Sequence record: PV261924.1 | Direction: 5' to 3' (one strand) | DNA: 64,000 nucleotides | Part shown: positions 10,371 to 48,875 of the stretch, in pieces | How the letters are laid out: every line of letters begins with the position of its first letter | Numbering within the stretch: position 1 is the first letter of the stretch | Program-made: the position numbers and the translations under genes | The notes under the pieces: model-generated | What the model was told of the DNA's origin: nothing | Seen by the model: the letters and a program-made list of their open reading frames with translations, nothing else | Database searches by the model: none

Positions 10371-11006
10371 TTACCACTCCAGAGCCTCTGAAATGACAGG
10401 GAATTGCTCCTTGAAGATCTCCTTACAAGAGTTTGCAATGTCCATGTGTTCCTTCTGTGTACCATTGGCAGACCGAAGATCGATGTAATGAATCCAACTG
10501 CGAATTGAACCAGTCATATACATTTTGGTTGGTGTTGCCAACGGCAATACAAAGCGAGCACATTCTTTGGCGACTCCTGCTTCCAACATCTGATTGTAAA
10601 GATTATATGAGGAACTAAACAGAGTGACCATCTGACGTTCCAAACGGTCAACAACTTCAGGATCAAGATCGTCAATACTATTCTGACGATTCTTAACGTC
10701 TTGACGCCTCAGTTCGGGGAGTTCAATCTCAGTAGACAAGAGATTAGTACTTGCATATCGTTGAGAGAACTCTTGGAATGTAAACGAACGATGCCGCAAG
10801 ACTTGAGCAGCAAGACCACGGGTAGTCTCAATCTCAAGAGTCATGAATGCTTGTTCAAAAATACTCCAGTGTTGATGTTTGATACAATATCTTAGGAGAC
10901 CAGCAAAGTTCTCATTGTCCTGATTGTTTGGGTTAGACACACGTGCACAGTATGCAATGTGTTGCTCAGCATCAGGAGTGACTGAGATTAGTTTCGCTTG
11001 ATTCAT
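10371..11006 (-). CDS. thyX: Flavin-dependent thymidylate synthase
   Basis: RHRSFTFQEFSQRY signature. Confidence 0.96.
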   Translation of the reverse strand: MNQAKLISVTPDAEQHIAYCARVSNPNNQDNENFAGLLRYCIKHQHWSIFEQAFMTLEIETTRGLAAQVLRHRSFTFQEFSQRYASTNLLSTEIELPELRRQDVKNRQNSIDDLDPEVVDRLERQMVTLFSSSYNLYNQMLEAGVAKECARFVLPLATPTKMYMTGSIRSWIHYIDLRSANGTQKEHMDIANSCKEIFKEQFPVISEALEW

Positions 11007-11127: not shown

Positions 11128-11335
11128 GATTGAAGTATGCGTTGAAATATGCAACGATTCCATTACTTAACTTGTTCCCCTGAGAGATCCAAGTGTCAAC
11201 ACACTCATAGATATCTTTTGTTGAATATGATGTTTTGTCTATACGACCACTACCATATCTATTTAACAAAACTTTAAGACATTGTTCACGGAGTTTCATT
11301 CTCTCCTCCGTGTACCTCCAATCCTCATTCGTCAT
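11093..11335 (-). CDS. Hypothetical protein
   Basis: MTNEDWRYTEERMKLREQCL; tightly packed operon. Confidence 0.65.
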   Translation of the reverse strand: MTNEDWRYTEERMKLREQCLKVLLNRYGSGRIDKTSYSTKDIYECVDTWISQGNKLSNGIVAYFNAYFNHENKESNQVHP

Positions 11336-11483
11336 CTTCGAATACCTCATCGTAGTCAGGGAGTGGAGGAAGTCTTTCCTCCGTCTTTACGTATGCACCA
11401 GGATCAGAATACACCTCCGATTCCAATGCGTCAAGTAGAAGTCTGAGATTTCTGATGATTAATTTAAGATTGTCTTTTTCCAT
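11325..11483 (-). CDS. Conserved small hypothetical protein
   Basis: MEKDNLKLIIRNLRLLLDALESEVYSD. Confidence 0.7.
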   Translation of the reverse strand: MEKDNLKLIIRNLRLLLDALESEVYSDPGAYVKTEERLPPLPDYDEVFEDDE

Positions 11484-11508
11484 AAAAAAAGGGGACCTAT
11501 GTCCCCAG
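11484..11508 (-). terminator. Rho-independent terminator
   Basis: GGGGAC-ATAG-GTCCCC followed by T7 on minus strand. Confidence 0.75.
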
Positions 11509-11536: not shown

Positions 11537-11704
11537 TCACTTGACGTAAGTGCGTCCACGGTAGCAAAATGTTCCGTGGGTTTCATTTTTCTCTTCACAG
11601 TGTACATCATACTCAACACCACGATATGCAGTGTGAGAAATCTGTGCGTCGTGAAGTGCAGATGCTTTGTTGATCTGCTTCTTGATCATGTTCAGTGTGT
11701 TCAT
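11537..11704 (-). CDS. DUF4278-like small protein (two YRG motifs)
   Basis: Manual translation MNTLNMIKKQINKASALHDAQISHTAYRGVEYDVHCEEKNETHGTFCYRGRTYVK; GGAG SD. Confidence 0.7.
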   Translation of the reverse strand: MNTLNMIKKQINKASALHDAQISHTAYRGVEYDVHCEEKNETHGTFCYRGRTYVK

Positions 11705-11738
11705 GAGTTTACTCCTGAAATACTAGGGATTTTTACCC

Positions 11739-11954
11739 CGTTCCTTCAGTCGTGTGCGTCCCTGATACACCTCATTCCATGACTGCCGACAAGTTTTTTA
11801 AGAATTTGAGTCTTAGACTTATCAGAAAGATATGGATCTTCCATAACCACATCTATAACTTCCTTCACCGACTCACAGGACATTGGATGTTCTGAAGCAG
11901 TTGCAGGAGTGAATAGAAGTAGAAGGAGTATGAAGTATTTCATGGGATGAACGA
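11739..11954 (-). ncRNA. glnA-like RNA module 2, with a 65-aa ORF inside its P2 loop
   Basis: UCGUUCAUCCC (11954-11944) pairs with GGGACGCACACGACUGAAGGAACG (11762-11739). Confidence 0.55.
11746..11943 (-). CDS. Small signal-peptide protein nested in the RNA stem loop
   Basis: MKYFILLLLLFTPATA signal peptide; ATG directly follows UCCC; last codons RDAHD* are encoded by the RNA 3' strand. Confidence 0.7.
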   Translation of the reverse strand: MKYFILLLLLFTPATASEHPMSCESVKEVIDVVMEDPYLSDKSKTQILKKLVGSHGMRCIRDAHD

Positions 11955-12527
11955 TTAGAGTGATTTTTTCCAGCGACGAATAGAAGTATGAGATGTTTGA
12001 TAAACTTCTGCAAGTTTTCTAATGGGTAAAGATAAAATAGATTCATCTTTACTTACATCTTTTAGAAAGTCATCATACATTTTACCTCTGGTATATGTTA
12101 TGGATTTAGTAGTAGCGTATTCTTTTGGATTACGACTTCTACCTTTCCACCACCCAGAAGGAATGTCATTCTCATAAACTACTCGTTCATTTTTACCGTC
12201 AGTAATACGAACTTTACCAAAACAGGGATTGCCTCTACCAATTCGTTCTCCCTGAGAACAGAAAGAAAATGAAGAAGATGTTTGCTTTGCCCTATTAGCA
12301 AAGTGAGGATTAGTATCAACTTGATAAAACTCATGGAGTTTTACTTCCGCTTCAACTGCTTCCTCTCTCGTAGCATGTTCGGTAAGAATGATTTTAGAGG
12401 AAGGATTAAATGTTTTGTCTCCATAGGAACCAAAATAATTATCCTCCACTGGATTACACTCACATCCTCTGCTACCAATGTAGCCTCTCCCAAAGGGTTC
12501 GTAAGAGTAGTAAGTGTAATAAATCAT
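11955..12527 (-). mobile_element. Free-standing GIY-YIG (Seg-like) homing endonuclease gene
   Basis: YYTYYSYEPFGRGYIGSR (GIY-YIG variant), EEAVEAE, W.KGR motif, C-terminal HTH-like segment. Confidence 0.75.
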
Positions 12528-12542
12528 TCTAATTGCTTACGC

Positions 12543-12586
12543 TCCGTTCCGCGACTTACTTGCGTCCAGTTACCTGGATGAACGAC
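12543..12586 (-). ncRNA. glnA-like RNA module 1
   Basis: UCGUUCA-UCCAG-GUAA-CUGGA-CGCAAGUAAGUCG-CGGAACG: P1 CGUUC/GAACG, P2 hairpin, AAGUAAG loop-E-like strand. Confidence 0.6.
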
Positions 12587-12587
12587 A

Positions 12588-12620
12588 GGTCTATTATAGA
12601 CCACTGTAGTTATTTAGTCA
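12588..12620 (-). promoter_or_regulatory. Promoter elements upstream of the glnA-like RNA
   Basis: CTAAATA late-promoter-like box, then TATAAT inside the palindrome GGTCTATAATAGACC. Confidence 0.45.
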
Positions 12621-12808
12621 AGGGGCCCGTACTCTTCGCCCTCTTTGATCAGTTGGGACACATAGTTTTCTGTCCCATCCATGGTCTTGACTTCGAAGAT
12701 CGTGGACTTCTGATACTTCTTGATCTTTTTATATTTTTTGACGAGGGCTTGAACCTGATCTTGGTTCATGTCCAAACCTTCGAACTTAATGTCAAATCCG
12801 TTACTCAT
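12614..12808 (-). CDS. Conserved hypothetical protein
   Basis: ORF track; KKYKKIKKYQKS..F motif. Confidence 0.65.
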   Translation of the reverse strand: MSNGFDIKFEGLDMNQDQVQALVKKYKKIKKYQKSTIFEVKTMDGTENYVSQLIKEGEEYGPLD

Positions 12809-17229: not shown

Positions 17230-17340
17230 AAAAGTAAGACCATCAGGGAAATGGTGGAGTTACTATTTCCTCGTACCCTTAACGAGGATATGAAAGACGT
17301 GTTTATACTCCCTAGAGGTCTTGGTTTAAGGGGAGTTTAG
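17230..17340 (-). ncRNA. Structured psbA leader, likely PhotoRC-II-type motif
   Basis: Hairpins CCTCGT..ACGAGG, ACCAT..ATGGT and CCT-CTAG-GG in the 5' UTR; this family is known upstream of cyanophage psbA. Confidence 0.5.
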
Positions 17341-17369
17341 GTAAGTCAGGAAACCCTGACCTGTCCATG

Positions 17370-44758: not shown

Positions 44759-44764
44759 GGTACT

Positions 44765-44946
44765 CAGGCTCGCCAAGTTATTTTTATCACTGAGTAATAA
44801 CTAAATCTCAGGCGGGGAGAGATCCCATCCGCACCAACTAATCTTTGGAGAATTAGTAAACTCAGTTGGGTCCAGTGACTCCACCACTTAGTTTTACGAA
44901 CTAAGAAACGCGGGATTGAAGGGGCCTCCCTTCACCGACCAGTGCT
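44765..44946 (-). ncRNA. manA/wcaG-type structured RNA with three repeated hairpin/pseudoknot modules
   Basis: CUUAGUU/AACUAAG, ACUAAU/AUUAGU and AGUUAUU/AAUAACU hairpins, each followed by UGG; family assignment is from recall only. Confidence 0.6.
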
Positions 44947-46085: not shown

Positions 46086-46158
46086 TGGGGGATGTGGGGA
46101 TCGAACCCACCTTTCTCCTGTTATGAGCAGGGTGCTTTCACCAGAGAGCTAAACCCCC
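46086..46158 (-). tRNA. tRNA anticodon CAT (Ile2 or Met)
   Basis: Cloverleaf, loop CTCATAA, T arm GTGGG-TTCGATC-CCCAC; no encoded CCA. Confidence 0.85.
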
Positions 46159-46162
46159 AAGG

Positions 46163-46234
46163 TAGGACTGCTGGGAATTGAACCCAGGTCACACCGTTAT
46201 AAGCAGTGGGCCTTAACCGTTAGGCGACAGTCCC
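46163..46234 (-). tRNA. tRNA-Ile(TAT)
   Basis: CACTG-CTTATAA-CGGTG anticodon arm; acceptor GGGACTG/CAGTCCT. Confidence 0.85.
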
Positions 46235-46407
46235 TAGGGAGCTTCGTTATTATTTTCTGAGTACATTTTGTACAATGGATCGTCAGTTGGCATTATCACT
46301 GCTGCAGATCCATTCTCATTAACTATTCCTATATGTTCCCCTTCTTCTACTCTTTGTATCAGTTCATCCCATCTCTCTTGAAATTCTTGCACCGTGAAGA
46401 CTTCCAT
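46234..46407 (-). CDS. Phd/YefM antitoxin-like small protein
   Basis: Manual translation MEVFTVQEFQERWDELIQRVEEGEHIGIVNENGSAAVIMP...; stop codon shares 1 nt with tRNA-Ile G1. Confidence 0.6.
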   Translation of the reverse strand: MEVFTVQEFQERWDELIQRVEEGEHIGIVNENGSAAVIMPTDDPLYKMYSENNNEAP

Positions 46408-46442
46408 AATTGATAATATTTAGTGGGGGATTGGTTACCCAA

Positions 46443-46516
46443 TCGGAATGACGCGATTCGAACACGCGGCCGCCCGCTCCCAAAGCGGGTGCTCTACCAA
46501 ACTGAGCTACATTCCG
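46443..46516 (-). tRNA. tRNA-Pro(TGG)
   Basis: CCCGC-TTTGGGA-GCGGG anticodon arm. Confidence 0.93.
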
Positions 46517-46606
46517 TGGCGGAAGAGGTGAGATTCGAACTCACGGAGGACTTGCACCCTCGTCGGTTTTCAAGACCGATGCCATAAACCACTCGACCAC
46601 TCTTCC
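46517..46606 (-). tRNA. tRNA-Ser(TGA)
   Basis: TCGGT-CTTGAAA-ACCGA; long variable arm; encoded CCA. Confidence 0.95.
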
Positions 46607-46792
46607 TTATTTCCACAATCCTACCACAATCAACAATCCTTGTGCATAGAAGAACAGTAAAACTGAACCTATACAAGCACTAATGAGAGTAGCAGTCTTG
46701 TTATGTTTATCGATTGCTTTATCTATCATCTCCTGACACTGACGTTCGGTGATGTAGTGTTCGGGTTTGATTTGATCGAATCGATGTGACAT
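46607..46792 (-). CDS. Small membrane protein
   Basis: CQEMIDKAIDKHNKTATLIS followed by a TM segment. Confidence 0.65.
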   Translation of the reverse strand: MSHRFDQIKPEHYITERQCQEMIDKAIDKHNKTATLISACIGSVLLFFYAQGLLIVVGLWK

Positions 46793-46821
46793 AGTAAGTA
46801 TACTGTATGTATCAAAGAATG

Positions 46822-47379
46822 TCAAGTATAAGTATATGCGATTGTCATTCTTGGATGTTTACAAAGAACATTAGGAGCAAACCCCATGTGTTCCAAATGT
46901 GCGGGGAACAAGACTGCGTCGTTAGGAATGAATGATTGATAAAGATATTCTTTGTCTTCAGTCATTACAACAAACTCACCTCCCCATGAACTATTCCAAG
47001 AAGGATTCGCAAAAATTAAAAGAGTCCAACTTCCAAATGAACCATCAGTATGAAACGTAGACTCTTGACCAAAAAACTGAATGTTGGTATTAACTCTATT
47101 TAATGTCAGATTTTGTTTGATAATTTTTTGACATTGATACTTGAGTAGAGTACCATACTTAATCAGTGTAAGGTTATCACCAATAGTATTGAATTTTGAT
47201 AATGGTTTCATCAAACATCCCATATTGGGATGGTCTTCCTCATAACTATCGTTCTTGGTGAATCTCCAGGTATTGTATTTTGAATCCAGTTCGTCGTTCA
47301 GTGAAAAGAAATCCTTTGTATCAAGTATGTTCTTAATACGATAGATGTTATCTTTGACTTCAACGAACCTCAAAATCAA
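46822..47379 (-). CDS. 2OG-Fe(II) oxygenase
   Basis: FHTD, W..SWGGEF, VLFPAHLEH, RMTIAY. Confidence 0.85.
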   Translation of the reverse strand: MILRFVEVKDNIYRIKNILDTKDFFSLNDELDSKYNTWRFTKNDSYEEDHPNMGCLMKPLSKFNTIGDNLTLIKYGTLLKYQCQKIIKQNLTLNRVNTNIQFFGQESTFHTDGSFGSWTLLIFANPSWNSSWGGEFVVMTEDKEYLYQSFIPNDAVLFPAHLEHMGFAPNVLCKHPRMTIAYTYT

Positions 47380-47608
47380 GTCTCCTCACTTTTCTTTTTC
47401 TCCTCTCTTCCTGATAGGAGAGATCAGAGTTACTAAGGACACCTTTTGAAGTTGGCTCCTTGTTAGATTCTACCATCACCACTTTAGACAAGTCAACTGC
47501 TGTAACCTTGTCTTCAATTACCGTCATCATATTGGGACAACCACAACAATGTGTGTGATGGTCACTTCGGATTTCTTTGTTACACTGTTTGCATCTTACA
47601 GTAATCAT
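47360..47608 (-). CDS. Zn-ribbon hypothetical protein
   Basis: CKQC...CCGCPN. Confidence 0.75.
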   Translation of the reverse strand: MITVRCKQCNKEIRSDHHTHCCGCPNMMTVIEDKVTAVDLSKVVMVESNKEPTSKGVLSNSDLSYQEERRKRKVRRLDFEVR

Positions 47609-47630
47609 GGGTCATGTTTGTAATTCGATA

Positions 47631-47702
47631 TGGGAGTTACAAGATTCGAACTTGTGACCAATTGCGTGTAAAGCAACTGCGCTACCGCTGCGCTAAACTC
47701 CC
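47631..47702 (-). tRNA. tRNA-Val(TAC)
   Basis: GTTGC-TTTACAC-GCAAT; acceptor GGGAGTT/AACTCCC. Confidence 0.92.
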
Positions 47703-48106
47703 TTAGGATGACCCCCATTTTTGTATCTACCACCTTTACTTTTGTTTGGTGGTAATGTCTTTACTGCATGGCAGTTAGGACACAATACCTGGAGATTATC
47801 TTGACTGTGATTGAAGGGGTCATTATCTATATGGTCAATCTCCAGTGGCACATTACCAGTGTGTGGATTTACCTGAGACCAACCACAACAAGAACATTTA
47901 TAATCACTTTGTTCAAGTAAATATCTTCTTACATGGTTGGATACGATATATCCGTTACCCCCTGGACCTCCCTTCTTCCACTCTTCAACAAACAAATGTC
48001 TGGAGTGGTCTGACTGGCACTTACTACTACAATACTTGCCCTTCTTGTGATGGGGATTGTATGTGAATTCAGTGCCGCAAGACAGACAAGAGGAGGAGAG
48101 TAACAT
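47693..48106 (-). mobile_element. Free-standing HNH endonuclease gene in the tRNA cluster
   Basis: CLSC/YCSSKC, CSCCG, LEIDHIDNDPFNHSQDNLQVLCPNCH; own TATAAATA late promoter at 48127-48134; 3' end overlaps tRNA-Val. Confidence 0.85.
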
Positions 48107-48151
48107 AATCTGGTAGAGTGGTGTTTTATTTATAAACAACACTACTACCAA

Positions 48152-48223
48152 CTGCCCCGACTGGATTCGAACCAGTAACCTTGAAGTTAACAGCTTCCTG
48201 CACTGCCGTTGTGCTACAGGGCA
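48152..48223 (-). tRNA. tRNA-Asn(GTT)
   Basis: GAAG-CTGTTAA-CTTC anticodon arm. Confidence 0.9.
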
Positions 48224-48228
48224 TTTAC

Positions 48229-48423
48229 CTAACTGGATTTCTCCTCTTTAGCGGTCTTGAAGTAAAGTTTGTAATACCGTTGTTTCATTTCTGAAATGGT
48301 ATTCATGTCCTCTTCATACCCCATGTATTTAAGGAGTTGAAAAGAACCCTCAAGTTCACTGATCAATCGTAACATATTGATTGAAGATCTGTCAAGACCT
48401 CCGAACGTGTACTCTTTACTCAT
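48229..48423 (-). CDS. Hypothetical protein between tRNAs
   Basis: MSKEYTFGGLDR...LRLISELEGSFQLLKYMG; GGAGG SD. Confidence 0.65.
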   Translation of the reverse strand: MSKEYTFGGLDRSSINMLRLISELEGSFQLLKYMGYEEDMNTISEMKQRYYKLYFKTAKEEKSS

Positions 48424-48439
48424 AAACCTCCTAGGAGGA

Positions 48440-48512
48440 TGGAGAATAGGAGACTCGAACTCCTGACAGCCTGCTTGCAAAGCAGGTGCTCTACCAACTG
48501 AGCTAATTCCCC
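48440..48512 (-). tRNA. tRNA-Ala(TGC)
   Basis: CCTGC-TTTGCAA-GCAGG; G3:U70 pair. Confidence 0.95.
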
Positions 48513-48588
48513 TGGAGCCACTCACAGGACTCGAACCTGCGACTTGAGCTTTACAAAAGCCCTACTCTACCAACTGAGTTAGAGTGGC
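48513..48588 (-). tRNA. tRNA-Thr(TGT)
   Basis: GGGC-TTTTGTAAA-GCTC; encoded CCA. Confidence 0.93.
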
Positions 48589-48590
48589 AT

Positions 48591-48779
48591 GGGTTGGGCA
48601 GAAGGATTACATTATACCTTCAACAGAGGGGTCTCACTAATGTAGTAACGCCTCTGAACTTTCAGGACCCTTGGTATGGGTTCTCATGCCTCCTGTCTCC
48701 AGGTCACATGGTGGCCACCACAGCCTTCCTTACTATACAATGTTGGGTGCTTGACCACACCAACTTTTCTGTCATACCC
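48591..48779 (-). ncRNA. Candidate structured ncRNA between tRNA-Arg and tRNA-Thr
   Basis: No credible sense ORF; several hairpins incl. CCUG-GAGA-CAGG and CAGAGG/CCUCUG; 5' and 3' ends complementary. Confidence 0.55.
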
Positions 48780-48801
48780 TATGGAGATGATCAATCTCCA
48801 A

Positions 48802-48875
48802 CGACTCAAGTAGGATTCGAACCTACGACCGACTGCTTAGAAGGCAGTTGCTCTAATCCGCTGAGCTACTGAGTC
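48802..48875 (-). tRNA. tRNA-Arg(TCT)
   Basis: ACTGC-CTTCTAA-GCAGT anticodon arm. Confidence 0.95.

Follow-up and report, generated by a model that had tools for sequence, protein, structure and literature searches.

A probable two-core glutamine riboswitch leader of cyanomyoviruses with genes in its P2 stems and an endonuclease cassette as passenger

Genes of the DUF4278/IF17 type are switched ON by glutamine riboswitches, which act through an anti-ribosome-binding-site (anti-RBS) segment (PMC6212724). Type 1 glnA RNA (RF01739), as found in the Synechocystis gifB/IF17 leader, contains a P1 helix (CGUUC/GAACG), a P2 helix, an ACGNA junction, an AGUA/GAAG loop-E and a P3 helix; the gifB leader precedes a DUF4278 gene, and the anti-RBS next to the 3' side of its aptamer implies an ON switch (PMC6212724). 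Here we examine a leader RNA with the same parts, located on the minus strand of a 64,000-nucleotide (nt) stretch of DNA (sequence record PV261924.1, hereafter the window) that comes from a T4-like cyanomyovirus. The locus is 100% identical in the Synechococcus phages RN05-S and S-H68. The leader also shares features with the Glutamine-II RNA of marine picocyanobacteria (Downstream-peptide motif, RF01704), namely the CGUUCA-hairpin-CGCA core, the GGAACGG provided by the loop of the 3' helix, and the link to short DUF4278 proteins.

Riboswitches were almost absent from phages in a 2017 survey, which recorded just two glutamine aptamers in cyanophage genomes (PMC5473149). Cyanophage papers merely list glnA matches, one of which, of 99 nt, fits the nested form described below, and the available part of the glnA alignment of Weinberg 2010 holds sequences with CGACUAAAGGAACGG in its original set. 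The leader in the window consists of two related modules about 800 nt apart, and an original prediction, made from the sequence, proposed that they form a split glnA-like RNA that couples nitrogen status to up to three phage genes. The minus-strand motifs and positions on which that proposal was built were all exact. We consider it probable that the leader is a two-core glutamine riboswitch specific to cyanomyoviruses, operating as an ON switch, in which an endonuclease cassette is a passenger.

The outer aptamer, helix P3 and the expression platform

On the minus strand, module 1 reads CGUUC-A-UCCAG-GUAA-CUGGA-CGCA-AGUA-AGUCG-C-GGAACGG, with GGAACGG at 12550-12544 (Table 1; the numbers 1 and 2 in brackets after a motif denote the module). 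Module 2 reads CGUUC-A-UCCC (11953-11944), followed by an open reading frame (ORF) from AUG to UGA (11943-11746) and the core GGGA-CGCACA-CGACU-GAAG-GAACGG (11762-11738). In both modules a P2 hairpin, P2a or P2b, comes straight after CGUUC-A and is followed by ACG(G/C)A, with covariation in both hairpins. Loop-E lies beside P1 and is continued by P3, as seen in the Rfam alignment of relatives and in compensatory changes in P3. Furthermore, a promoter is located directly upstream and a DUF4278 gene directly downstream, which is the 5'-leader position of type 1 RNAs. By its helices, loop-E, gene association and Rfam score in relatives, the leader can be assigned to the type 1 glutamine riboswitches, and the phage element would be expected to bind glutamine. 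Two copies of the motif CGTTCATCC are present in the window, where 0.29 would be expected, but 2 occurrences were reached in 5 of 100 shuffles, so that the repeat is weak evidence taken alone.

The Rfam models have gathering scores of 35 bits (Glutamine, RF01739) and 33 bits (Glutamine-II, RF01704). In a permissive search, module 1 of the window alone reached 27.6 bits (E = 0.0018) for Glutamine and 24.8 bits for Glutamine-II, both below gathering, and the low RF01739 score is explained by a model that cannot span the 800-nt insert. Natural compact relatives, which stood in for an ORF-deleted version of the window, passed the RF01739 gathering score at 38.4-43.6 bits via pairing between the modules. 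The Rfam search proposed in the original prediction thus failed on the native locus and succeeded on the relatives. In their alignments P1 was composed of CGUUC from module 1 and GAACG from module 2, AGUA/GAAG formed loop-E, and P3 was aligned as AGU...ACU with 38-48 nt inserted.

To collect related loci, IMG/VR was scanned with a pattern in which the bases of the proposed P3 were left free, which gave 120 loci, and targeted scans added 64. A total of 178 loci were resolvable, 159 of which were distinct, and one of the 159 was set aside as mis-parsed by the regular expression, leaving 158 that were scored for P3. All five P3 pairs were standard in essentially every one of the 158 distinct elements. 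A harder test was based on loci taken solely because the 5' strand departed from AGUCG, and in nearly all of them a partner 60-250 nt away was compensated. The compensated variants were AGUCA/UGACU (41 loci), AAUCG/CGAUU (14), AGUCU/AGACU (3) and AUUCG/CGAAU (3), along with 5 G-U intermediates and only 2 to 3 mismatched loci. P3 covaries at two positions, between G-C, A-U and U-A, while the variant scans found no changes at positions 3 and 4, which are invariant. By this covariation across the 178 viral loci, AGUCG/CGACU is identified as the P3 helix of a type 1 glnA aptamer, so that P3 and loop-E are formed across the two modules much as had been proposed. It was also noted that in two loci (L175 and L179) with a compensated P3 the E-loop strand is one base longer, reading CGAUU-GAAAGG and not GAAGG or AAAGG.

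A consensus fold was computed with RNAalifold from 26 natural compact elements, with no structure supplied. It returned five helices: an outer P1 in which CGUUC(1) is paired with GAACG(2), P2a, P3, a GAACG(1)/CGUUC(2) hairpin, and P2b. Of the cells in this alignment, 99.1% were paired, compared to 92.1% in shuffles and 39-55% with slid partners, and the covariation score of 0.238 (0.094 in shuffles) was reached by none of 500 shuffles.

Across the relatives, a CU(A/G)AAG segment has its complement in CUU(U/C)AG, a motif overlapping the downstream gene's Shine-Dalgarno (SD) sequence. This anti-SD helix has six pairs, which were standard in 98.8% of cases in register, against 37-76% when slid, and the variable R:Y pair was A:U in 67, G:C in 58, G:U in 28, A:G in 2 and A:C in none. 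Minimum free energy (MFE) folds were computed for compact elements, the spliced window element and the native 897-nt RNA, and the anti-SD helix, the inner hairpin and P2b were present in all of them; in the native RNA, forcing the complete nested aptamer cost only +4.1 kcal/mol. The overlap of the pairing with the SD points to a glutamine ON switch. In the absence of glutamine, CUGAAG would pair with UUUCAG over the SD and block translation of the DUF4278/IF17-like gene; when glutamine is bound, the closed outer P1, loop-E and P3 would withdraw CUGAAG and free the SD, as proposed for Synechocystis gifB. A further complementarity was observed between GUUCAU of the aptamer P1 strand and AUGAAC, with which the DUF4278 gene begins; 12583-12580 are paired with 11699-11702 in the MFE fold of the native RNA. 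This pairing is probably due to chance since genes in the same position that start with MAQV or MTTI have no such complement.

The protein encoded downstream can probably be placed in the DUF4278 family, as had been suggested from its two YRG motifs. Its best Pfam match is DUF4278 (PF14105), at 22.0 bits (E = 2.2e-4; cutoff 25.3), and it matches PHROG 545 with E = 5.5e-36. All of ten diverse proteins encoded at the same position in relatives matched DUF4278 only, 5 of them above the cutoff, and two Y[RK]G motifs were present in 147 of 148 such proteins. The phage proteins are 35-56 amino acids long. The truncated DUF4278 forms of picocyanobacteria are similar in size, and their function is unproven (PMC6212724).

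The -10 box in the window ends 8 nt 5' of CGUUC (12584-12580), and the transcript is therefore predicted to start 1-3 nt before the aptamer. Most related loci have the same promoter, with a -10 box ending 7-9 nt before CGUUCA. Terminator prediction found no terminator between modules 1 and 2 in the window, so that the modules are predicted to lie on the same transcript, as the split-aptamer proposal demands. The promoter and the terminator listed in Table 1 would delimit a single early minus-strand transcription unit. A hairpin, GGGGUAAAAAUCCC (11739-11726), had been flagged as terminator-like but was judged too weak and too variable for a terminator. Five loci (L003, which is S-SM2, at 660-715, and L052, L070, L095 and L103) contain an extra segment of about 50 nt between the 3' end of the aptamer and the SD; it has a hairpin of the CUGCGAAAGCAG type and is framed by GGG...CCC, and the window has only GGGGUAAAAAUCCC in this place.

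Table 1. Features of the leader and its transcription unit in the window (all on the minus strand)
Feature	Position	Strand	Basis
Promoter, sigma-70-type, TTGACT-17-TATAAT	12593..12621	-	11 of 12 matches
CGUUC(1), 5' strand of outer P1 (in a side-by-side model, of module 1's own P1)	12580..12584	-	Sequence, Rfam alignments
P2a hairpin UCCAG-GUAA-CUGGA, compact in the window	12565..12578	-	Three covarying pairs
Junction CGCA and E-loop 5' strand AGUA (12560-12557)	12557..12564	-	Aligned to Rfam glnA consensus ACGGAAGUA
P3 5' strand AGUCG	12552..12556	-	Pairs with 11752-11748, covariation across 178 loci
GAACG(1), 5' strand of inner P1 hairpin (or 3' strand of module 1's own P1)	12545..12549	-	RNAalifold
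Mobile cassette, 588 bp, with 190-amino-acid homing-endonuclease-like ORF (12527-11955)	11954..12541	-	Absence from S-B05, PHROG 314
CGUUC(2), 3' strand of inner P1 hairpin	11949..11953	-	Sequence, RNAalifold, native-RNA fold
P2b 5' strand UCCC, nested AUG directly after	11944..11947	-	Pairs with 11762-11759
Nested gene, 65-amino-acid two-Cys small protein	11746..11943	-	ORF, superfamily membership
P2b 3' strand GGGA	11759..11762	-	Covariation
P3 3' strand CGACU	11748..11752	-	Covariation
Anti-SD segment CUGAAG (last 2 nt of P3 and E-loop strand)	11744..11749	-	Pairs with 11720-11715
E-loop 3' strand GAAG (11747-11744) and GAACG(2), outer P1 3' strand (11743-11739)	11739..11747	-	Rfam alignment of relatives, RNAalifold
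UUUCAGGAG, anti-SD partner UUUCAG (11720-11715) overlapping SD AGGAG (11716-11712)	11712..11720	-	Anti-SD pairing
DUF4278 (IF17-like) gene, 55 amino acids, two YRG motifs, presumed regulated gene	11537..11704	-	Pfam, PHROG
Intrinsic terminator GGGGACAUAGGUCCCC and U-tract, end of unit	11491..11506	-	

The second core and the genes inside the P2 stems

The segment enclosed by P3 has the general form GGAACGG-linker-CGUUCA-P2b-GGGACGCA. It contains all residues common to the two known classes of glutamine aptamers, in circularly permuted order and with a P1 loop of 3-4 nt. In the MFE folds, including that of the native 897-nt RNA, GAACG(1) is paired with 11953-11949. Module 1 was always followed by module 2 in the 178 resolvable loci, and the IMG/VR scan revealed no outer aptamer with a simple P3 loop. 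The split-aptamer proposal was thus right that module 2 supplies strands of P3 and loop-E, and incomplete in that module 2 and GGAACGG(1) would also form a second core, which is always present.

We suggest that an outer canonical type 1 aptamer holds a permuted second core nested in its P3. The outer aptamer would derive its P1, P2, loop-E and P3 from the 5' portion of module 1 (CGUUC-A-P2a-CGCA-AGUA-AGUCG) combined with the module 2 tail (CGACU-GAAG-GAACG), and the inner core would consist of a hairpin P1 (GAACG-loop-CGUUC) followed by A, P2b and CGCA, placing two three-way junctions at opposite ends of a shared P3. The nested arrangement is favored by the RNAalifold consensus, the Rfam type 1 alignment, the MFE folds and the spacing of 1-2 nt between the P3 strand and GAACG(1).

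The linker between the modules was tabulated in the first 118 loci. The spacer after GGAACGG was 2-3 nt long (AG, AU, AGC and others) in 114 of them, the other 4 having an endonuclease gene or a remnant of it, and no further long linkers were found among the loci added later. The separation of 800 nt is therefore specific to a few phages, and adjoining cores are the rule. When GenBank was searched with a 40-nt probe spanning the junction of the two modules, 418 cyanophage records matched. Among 185,579 prokaryotic species genomes, 6 real instances of the pattern were identified, the rest being chance matches, and all 6 were on contigs resembling misbinned or contaminating cyanophage DNA. These records (L200, L204, L209, L212, L215 and L220) include NODE_6 of Nonlabens xiamenensis 1Q3 (188 kb), a contig of a Synechococcus metagenome-assembled genome (MAG; 194 kb), two Euryarchaeota TMED129 contigs, a Verrucomicrobiales MAG contig and an uncultured-bacterium contig. 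Owing to the genes located in its stems, the element largely escapes covariance-model searches.

An ORF was found in P2b in 128 of the 159 distinct elements and in P2a in 46 of the 153 distinct elements with module 1 resolved. P2 pairs 1-4 (the junction-proximal 4-5) were paired in at least 99% of the 128 distinct ORF-bearing loci, with covariation, which bears out the proposed UCCC/GGGA pairing; the P2b variants were U-A/C-G/G-C and C-G/U-A/U-G. In the window, the nested ORF ends in codons, (R)DAHD-stop, that also make up the 3' strands of P2b and P3 and the CGCACA junction between them, with the UGA stop codon located within the E-loop. Amino acid changes before DAND in the relatives (W, R or K) keep P2b paired. 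The AUG of the module 2 ORFs was located 4 nt past CGUUCA in 103 of 107 cases, and 102 of 107 ORFs stopped exactly at the UAA or UGA of CGAC-URA-AGG, in the E-loop. The nested ORFs of L029, L043, L059, L062 and L079 do not terminate at the E-loop stop codon but end earlier, read through or have no AUG, and P2b of L059 reads GAUUAUG/CAUAAUC, start codon included.

P2b lengths were nearly all multiples of three, and variability within the nested ORFs, measured as entropy, decreased from codon position 3 to 1 to 2. The P2-loop proteins, of about 50-65 amino acids, form one superfamily: all 163 distinct proteins contain two Cys, 34-40 residues apart, and three clusters could be joined by profile comparison with probabilities of 91.5% and 95.4%. 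Three of the families correspond to PHROGs of unknown function. When the proteins were used as tblastn queries against the collected locus DNA, all 211 matches were inside aptamer P2 loops. For the 65-amino-acid protein of the window, no homolog was found in Pfam, PHROG or by homology search. A single-sequence AlphaFold model of it (predicted local distance difference test score, pLDDT, 70) showed a low-confidence hydrophobic N-terminal segment and then a helix-turn-helix with Cys near both ends. The spacing of the AUG, the position of the stop, the multiples of three, the codon entropy and the two-Cys superfamily indicate that the P2-loop ORFs are real genes. By these sequence criteria, the ORF in P2 represents a conserved gene superfamily resident in P2 loops and not an oddity of the window phage.

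A linker of AG creates a GGAG 10 nt before the AUG; among elements whose P2b contains an ORF this was seen in 110 of 124, and among those lacking an ORF there in none of 36. The association suggests that the inter-module linker doubles as the SD of the nested ORF. Since the nested start codon abuts P2b and the GGAG of the relatives lies in the inner P1 loop, folding of the aptamer and translation of the nested ORF should be mutually exclusive. An extension of this argument, which we offer tentatively and do not expect to hold in full, is a translation-coupled switch with two outputs and two ligand sites on one helix, such that glutamine turns the P2-stem genes OFF and the IF17-like gene ON. 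At high glutamine, the start codons of the two-Cys genes would be sequestered and the IF17-like SD released simultaneously; at low glutamine, ribosomes on the nested ORF would cross the P2b, P3 and loop-E strands, stop in the E-loop and hold the aptamer open. If so, this would be the first natural riboswitch with coding aptamer stems, in which folding competes with translation of an internal gene, and hundreds of cyanophages would use it to tune the nitrogen metabolism of their hosts.

The endonuclease cassette, alternative explanations and gene neighborhood

The 588-bp cassette is located in the 3-nt loop between GAACG(1) and CGUUC(2), that is, in the inner P1 loop, at GGAACGGAG-CGT-[...]-TCA, with an exact boundary that is ambiguous within the CGT repeat. 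Phage S-B05 lacks the endonuclease gene and has flanks that are 99.7-99.9% identical to the window; its insert-free site is GGAACGGAUCGUUCAUCCC. In this phage GGAACGG is followed by two bases and then CGUUCAUCCCAUG, as is also the case in S-SM2. In Sf-CH5, identity to the window is 98.9% over the cassette with 40 nt on its upstream and 14 nt on its downstream side, but only 74-85% in the flanks, and all aptamer motifs are intact. L078 and L118 contain internally deleted remnants of 63 and 98 nt, and both halves of the aptamer are intact. The gene or a remnant was present in only 4 of the 178 resolved metagenomic loci and in five GenBank phages. It was also noted that the sole further difference between S-B05 and the window is a P2a loop that is 38 nt larger in S-B05 (L001 626-663 versus 12574-12570). 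These differences adjoin each other, as would be expected if both had been exchanged in a single recombination or co-conversion tract.

The encoded protein matched PHROG 314, 'homing endonuclease', with E = 1.3e-8, and no match was found in Pfam, NCBIfam or PDB that would assign it to a catalytic family. Residues 2-17 contain an IYY-x10-YIG motif that is GIY-YIG-like by eye only. The N-terminal 94 amino acids are 58% identical to S-PM2p178. F-CphI had appeared as the best distant match, but the annotation shows that the matching gene is its neighbor S-PM2p178. As expected for a homing gene, presence or absence is polymorphic at a precise site between near-identical genomes, and there is horizontal spread. 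The absence from S-B05, the Sf-CH5 cassette in divergent flanks and the remnants in L078 and L118 indicate that the cassette is mobile, and the 99.7% identity of the insert-free S-B05 suggests that the insertion was recent. On these comparisons, the cassette is best described as a rare, recent and horizontally moving selfish passenger that is not part of the switch. By analogy to endonuclease ORFs in the loops of group I introns, the near-invariant riboswitch DNA may have served as a homing site and the hairpin loop as the place of least harm.

Several observations weigh against the two-core riboswitch. At Rfam gathering scores no glutamine riboswitch is found in the window, where P2b has only 4 bp (UCCC/GGGA) and closes a 190-nt loop, and where P3 and the outer P1 must close over about 800 nt with two translated ORFs. 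The association statistics were calculated without correction for phylogeny. Furthermore, the four P1 strands are identical and invariant, with no variants found in a scan of the GAACG(1) strand, so that covariation cannot tell nested pairing (1-2', 1'-2) from side-by-side pairing (1-1', 2-2'), and in two relatives a single module suffices to pass the Rfam Glutamine-II model, at 35.7 bits for module 1 of L049 and at 34.0 bits for module 2 of L034. The last two observations would fit a domain-swapped tandem in which each module closes its own P1, like two pseudoknot aptamers of the Glutamine-II type, and AGUCG/CGACU is a bridging pseudoknot that lends module 2 its loop-E and couples two ligand sites. 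The covariation of P3 fits this arrangement equally well, the scores of module 1 of the window alone with both Rfam models agree with it, and P1 of module 1 can form first during transcription. We nevertheless think it rather unlikely, since RNAalifold and the Rfam type 1 model both choose the nested pairing, the GAACG(1)/CGUUC(2) hairpin is consistent in MFE folds, the gap of 1-2 nt between the P3 5' strand and GAACG(1) leaves little room for a pseudoknot (the Glutamine-II consensus has 4 nt), and the linker is constant at 3-4 nt, as for a hairpin loop. It is far less credible that something other than RNA structure, such as an endonuclease target in the DNA, the coding of a WDAND tail, or chance complementarity, accounts for the conservation of the repeated motifs. 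It is true that the module 2 core corresponds to the codons GAC GCA MAC GAC of the nested ORF and that homing endonucleases target conserved DNA, but ORF-free compact versions retain the same core, the Rfam covariance model scores above threshold, and amino acids are altered in ways that preserve P2b pairing. The compensatory changes in P3, P2a, P2b and the anti-SD helix already contradict such an explanation.

The insert itself raises the question of whether the switch is a relic in the window phage, the halves having been uncoupled by 588 bp on top of the 190-nt ORF. In that case the anti-SD helix would keep the DUF4278 gene repressed at all times, or the gene would be expressed via translational coupling, and the motifs would be intact only because the insertion is recent. 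The near-identity of the insert-free S-B05, the scarcity of the gene and its remnants, the short P2b of the window and the removal by the insert of the GGAG SD from the front of the nested ORF all agree with this. We regard it as a possible but not a likely outcome: the intact motifs in the divergent carrier Sf-CH5 and in both remnant loci argue that the switch still works with the insert, the long-range inner P1 and P2b still form in the native MFE fold, from which the full aptamer is only a few kcal/mol away, and the closing of P3 and P1 over a translated ORF of 150-190 nt is the norm among the distinct elements. The original prediction instead saw the distance of about 800 nt as the design of a long-range riboswitch through which glutamine would control up to three phage ORFs, namely the endonuclease, the nested ORF and the DUF4278 gene. 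All three are downstream of module 1 on one predicted transcript, and the endonuclease start is 15-18 nt past GGAACGG(1). Such a purpose-built arrangement is improbable, however, since the modules are normally 3-4 nt apart, and the endonuclease gene, for which a coupling to nitrogen status is unsupported, is missing in almost all relatives, spreads horizontally as a cassette, decays, and has the insertion site as its sole conserved relation to the aptamer.

As for the neighboring genes, a 52-amino-acid acidic ORF (MEKDNLKLIIRNLRLLLDALESEVYSDPGAY...) at 11325-11483 on the minus strand, directly 3' of the terminator, is conserved in S-SM2 (MERDKLKLIVRNLKLLVEALESEVYSDP...) and has no match in Pfam. 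A ThyX-type thymidylate synthase gene, 10371-11006 on the minus strand, is located just downstream of the unit; the annotations of RN05-S and S-B05 name it thymidylate synthase (complementing protein). Elsewhere on the minus strand of the window, we identified a manA RNA (48591-48800, 77.8 bits), a wcaG RNA (44762-44865, 66.4 bits), a PhotoRC-II RNA (17255-17348, 75.7 bits) and a cluster of nine tRNA genes (46086-48875). Together, these are the usual structured RNAs of cyanomyoviruses.

Comparison with described systems

A literature search revealed no paper on the nested core, the P2 ORFs or an endonuclease in a riboswitch; Ames & Breaker 2011 was outside this search. Relative to the literature found, the obligatory nested second core, the superfamily of small proteins in P2 loops, the use of the E-loop as stop codon and anti-SD, and the riboswitch homing endonuclease appear to be new. 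The element was detected in at least 418 deposited cyanophage records, compared to the two glutamine aptamers of the 2017 survey (PMC5473149). Two interlocked cores that share P3 would represent a new riboswitch architecture, and a natural aptamer that folds around translated ORFs makes the interplay of translation and ligand folding directly testable. It is also a candidate route by which phages manipulate nitrogen assimilation of the host, in that an IF17-like putative inhibitor of glutamine synthetase would be expressed only at high glutamine, accompanied by an uncharacterized superfamily of two-Cys proteins found only in the riboswitch P2 context.

The phage element differs from type 1 glnA RNA in several respects. 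Its P3 is not a simple hairpin but always encloses a second aptamer core, its P2 loops carry genes, and its junction is ACGCA and not ACGGA. AAAG can occur as the E-loop strand, which is itself the anti-SD, and the two-core element was found in phages only. In contrast to Glutamine-II RNA, whose model passes on the single modules of two relatives, the phage element has no start codon in the GGAACGG hairpin, and has loop-E and two cores on one helix.

The cassette provides an example of a homing endonuclease that has colonized a riboswitch and would take advantage of the extreme DNA conservation imposed by the RNA. This resembles group I introns with endonuclease ORFs in peripheral loops, such as td/I-TevI of phage T4, in which a structured RNA likewise folds around loop ORFs, a selfish endonuclease gene sits in the loop where it does least harm, and conserved RNA-coding DNA offers the homing site. 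However, the phage leader has no ribozyme or splicing, so that the insert is retained in the mature RNA; the endonuclease is free-standing, and the ORF in the other loop is a conserved cargo gene and not a mobility gene. A parallel to the endonuclease gene itself is S-PM2p178 (T4-like gene cluster 867), a small free-standing gene that is located beside F-CphI in a highly conserved cyanophage region, between psbA and psbD of cyanophage S-PM2, although the C-terminal, presumed DNA-binding half of the window endonuclease is different.

Finally, tandem aptamers (PMC2864571) also combine two cores of one class in a single leader with one expression platform, an arrangement that in the phage element could give cooperative or more digital sensing. 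Whereas the tandem aptamers described in the literature found are adjacent and self-contained, the phage cores would be interlocked or bridged by P3, with neither being complete alone.

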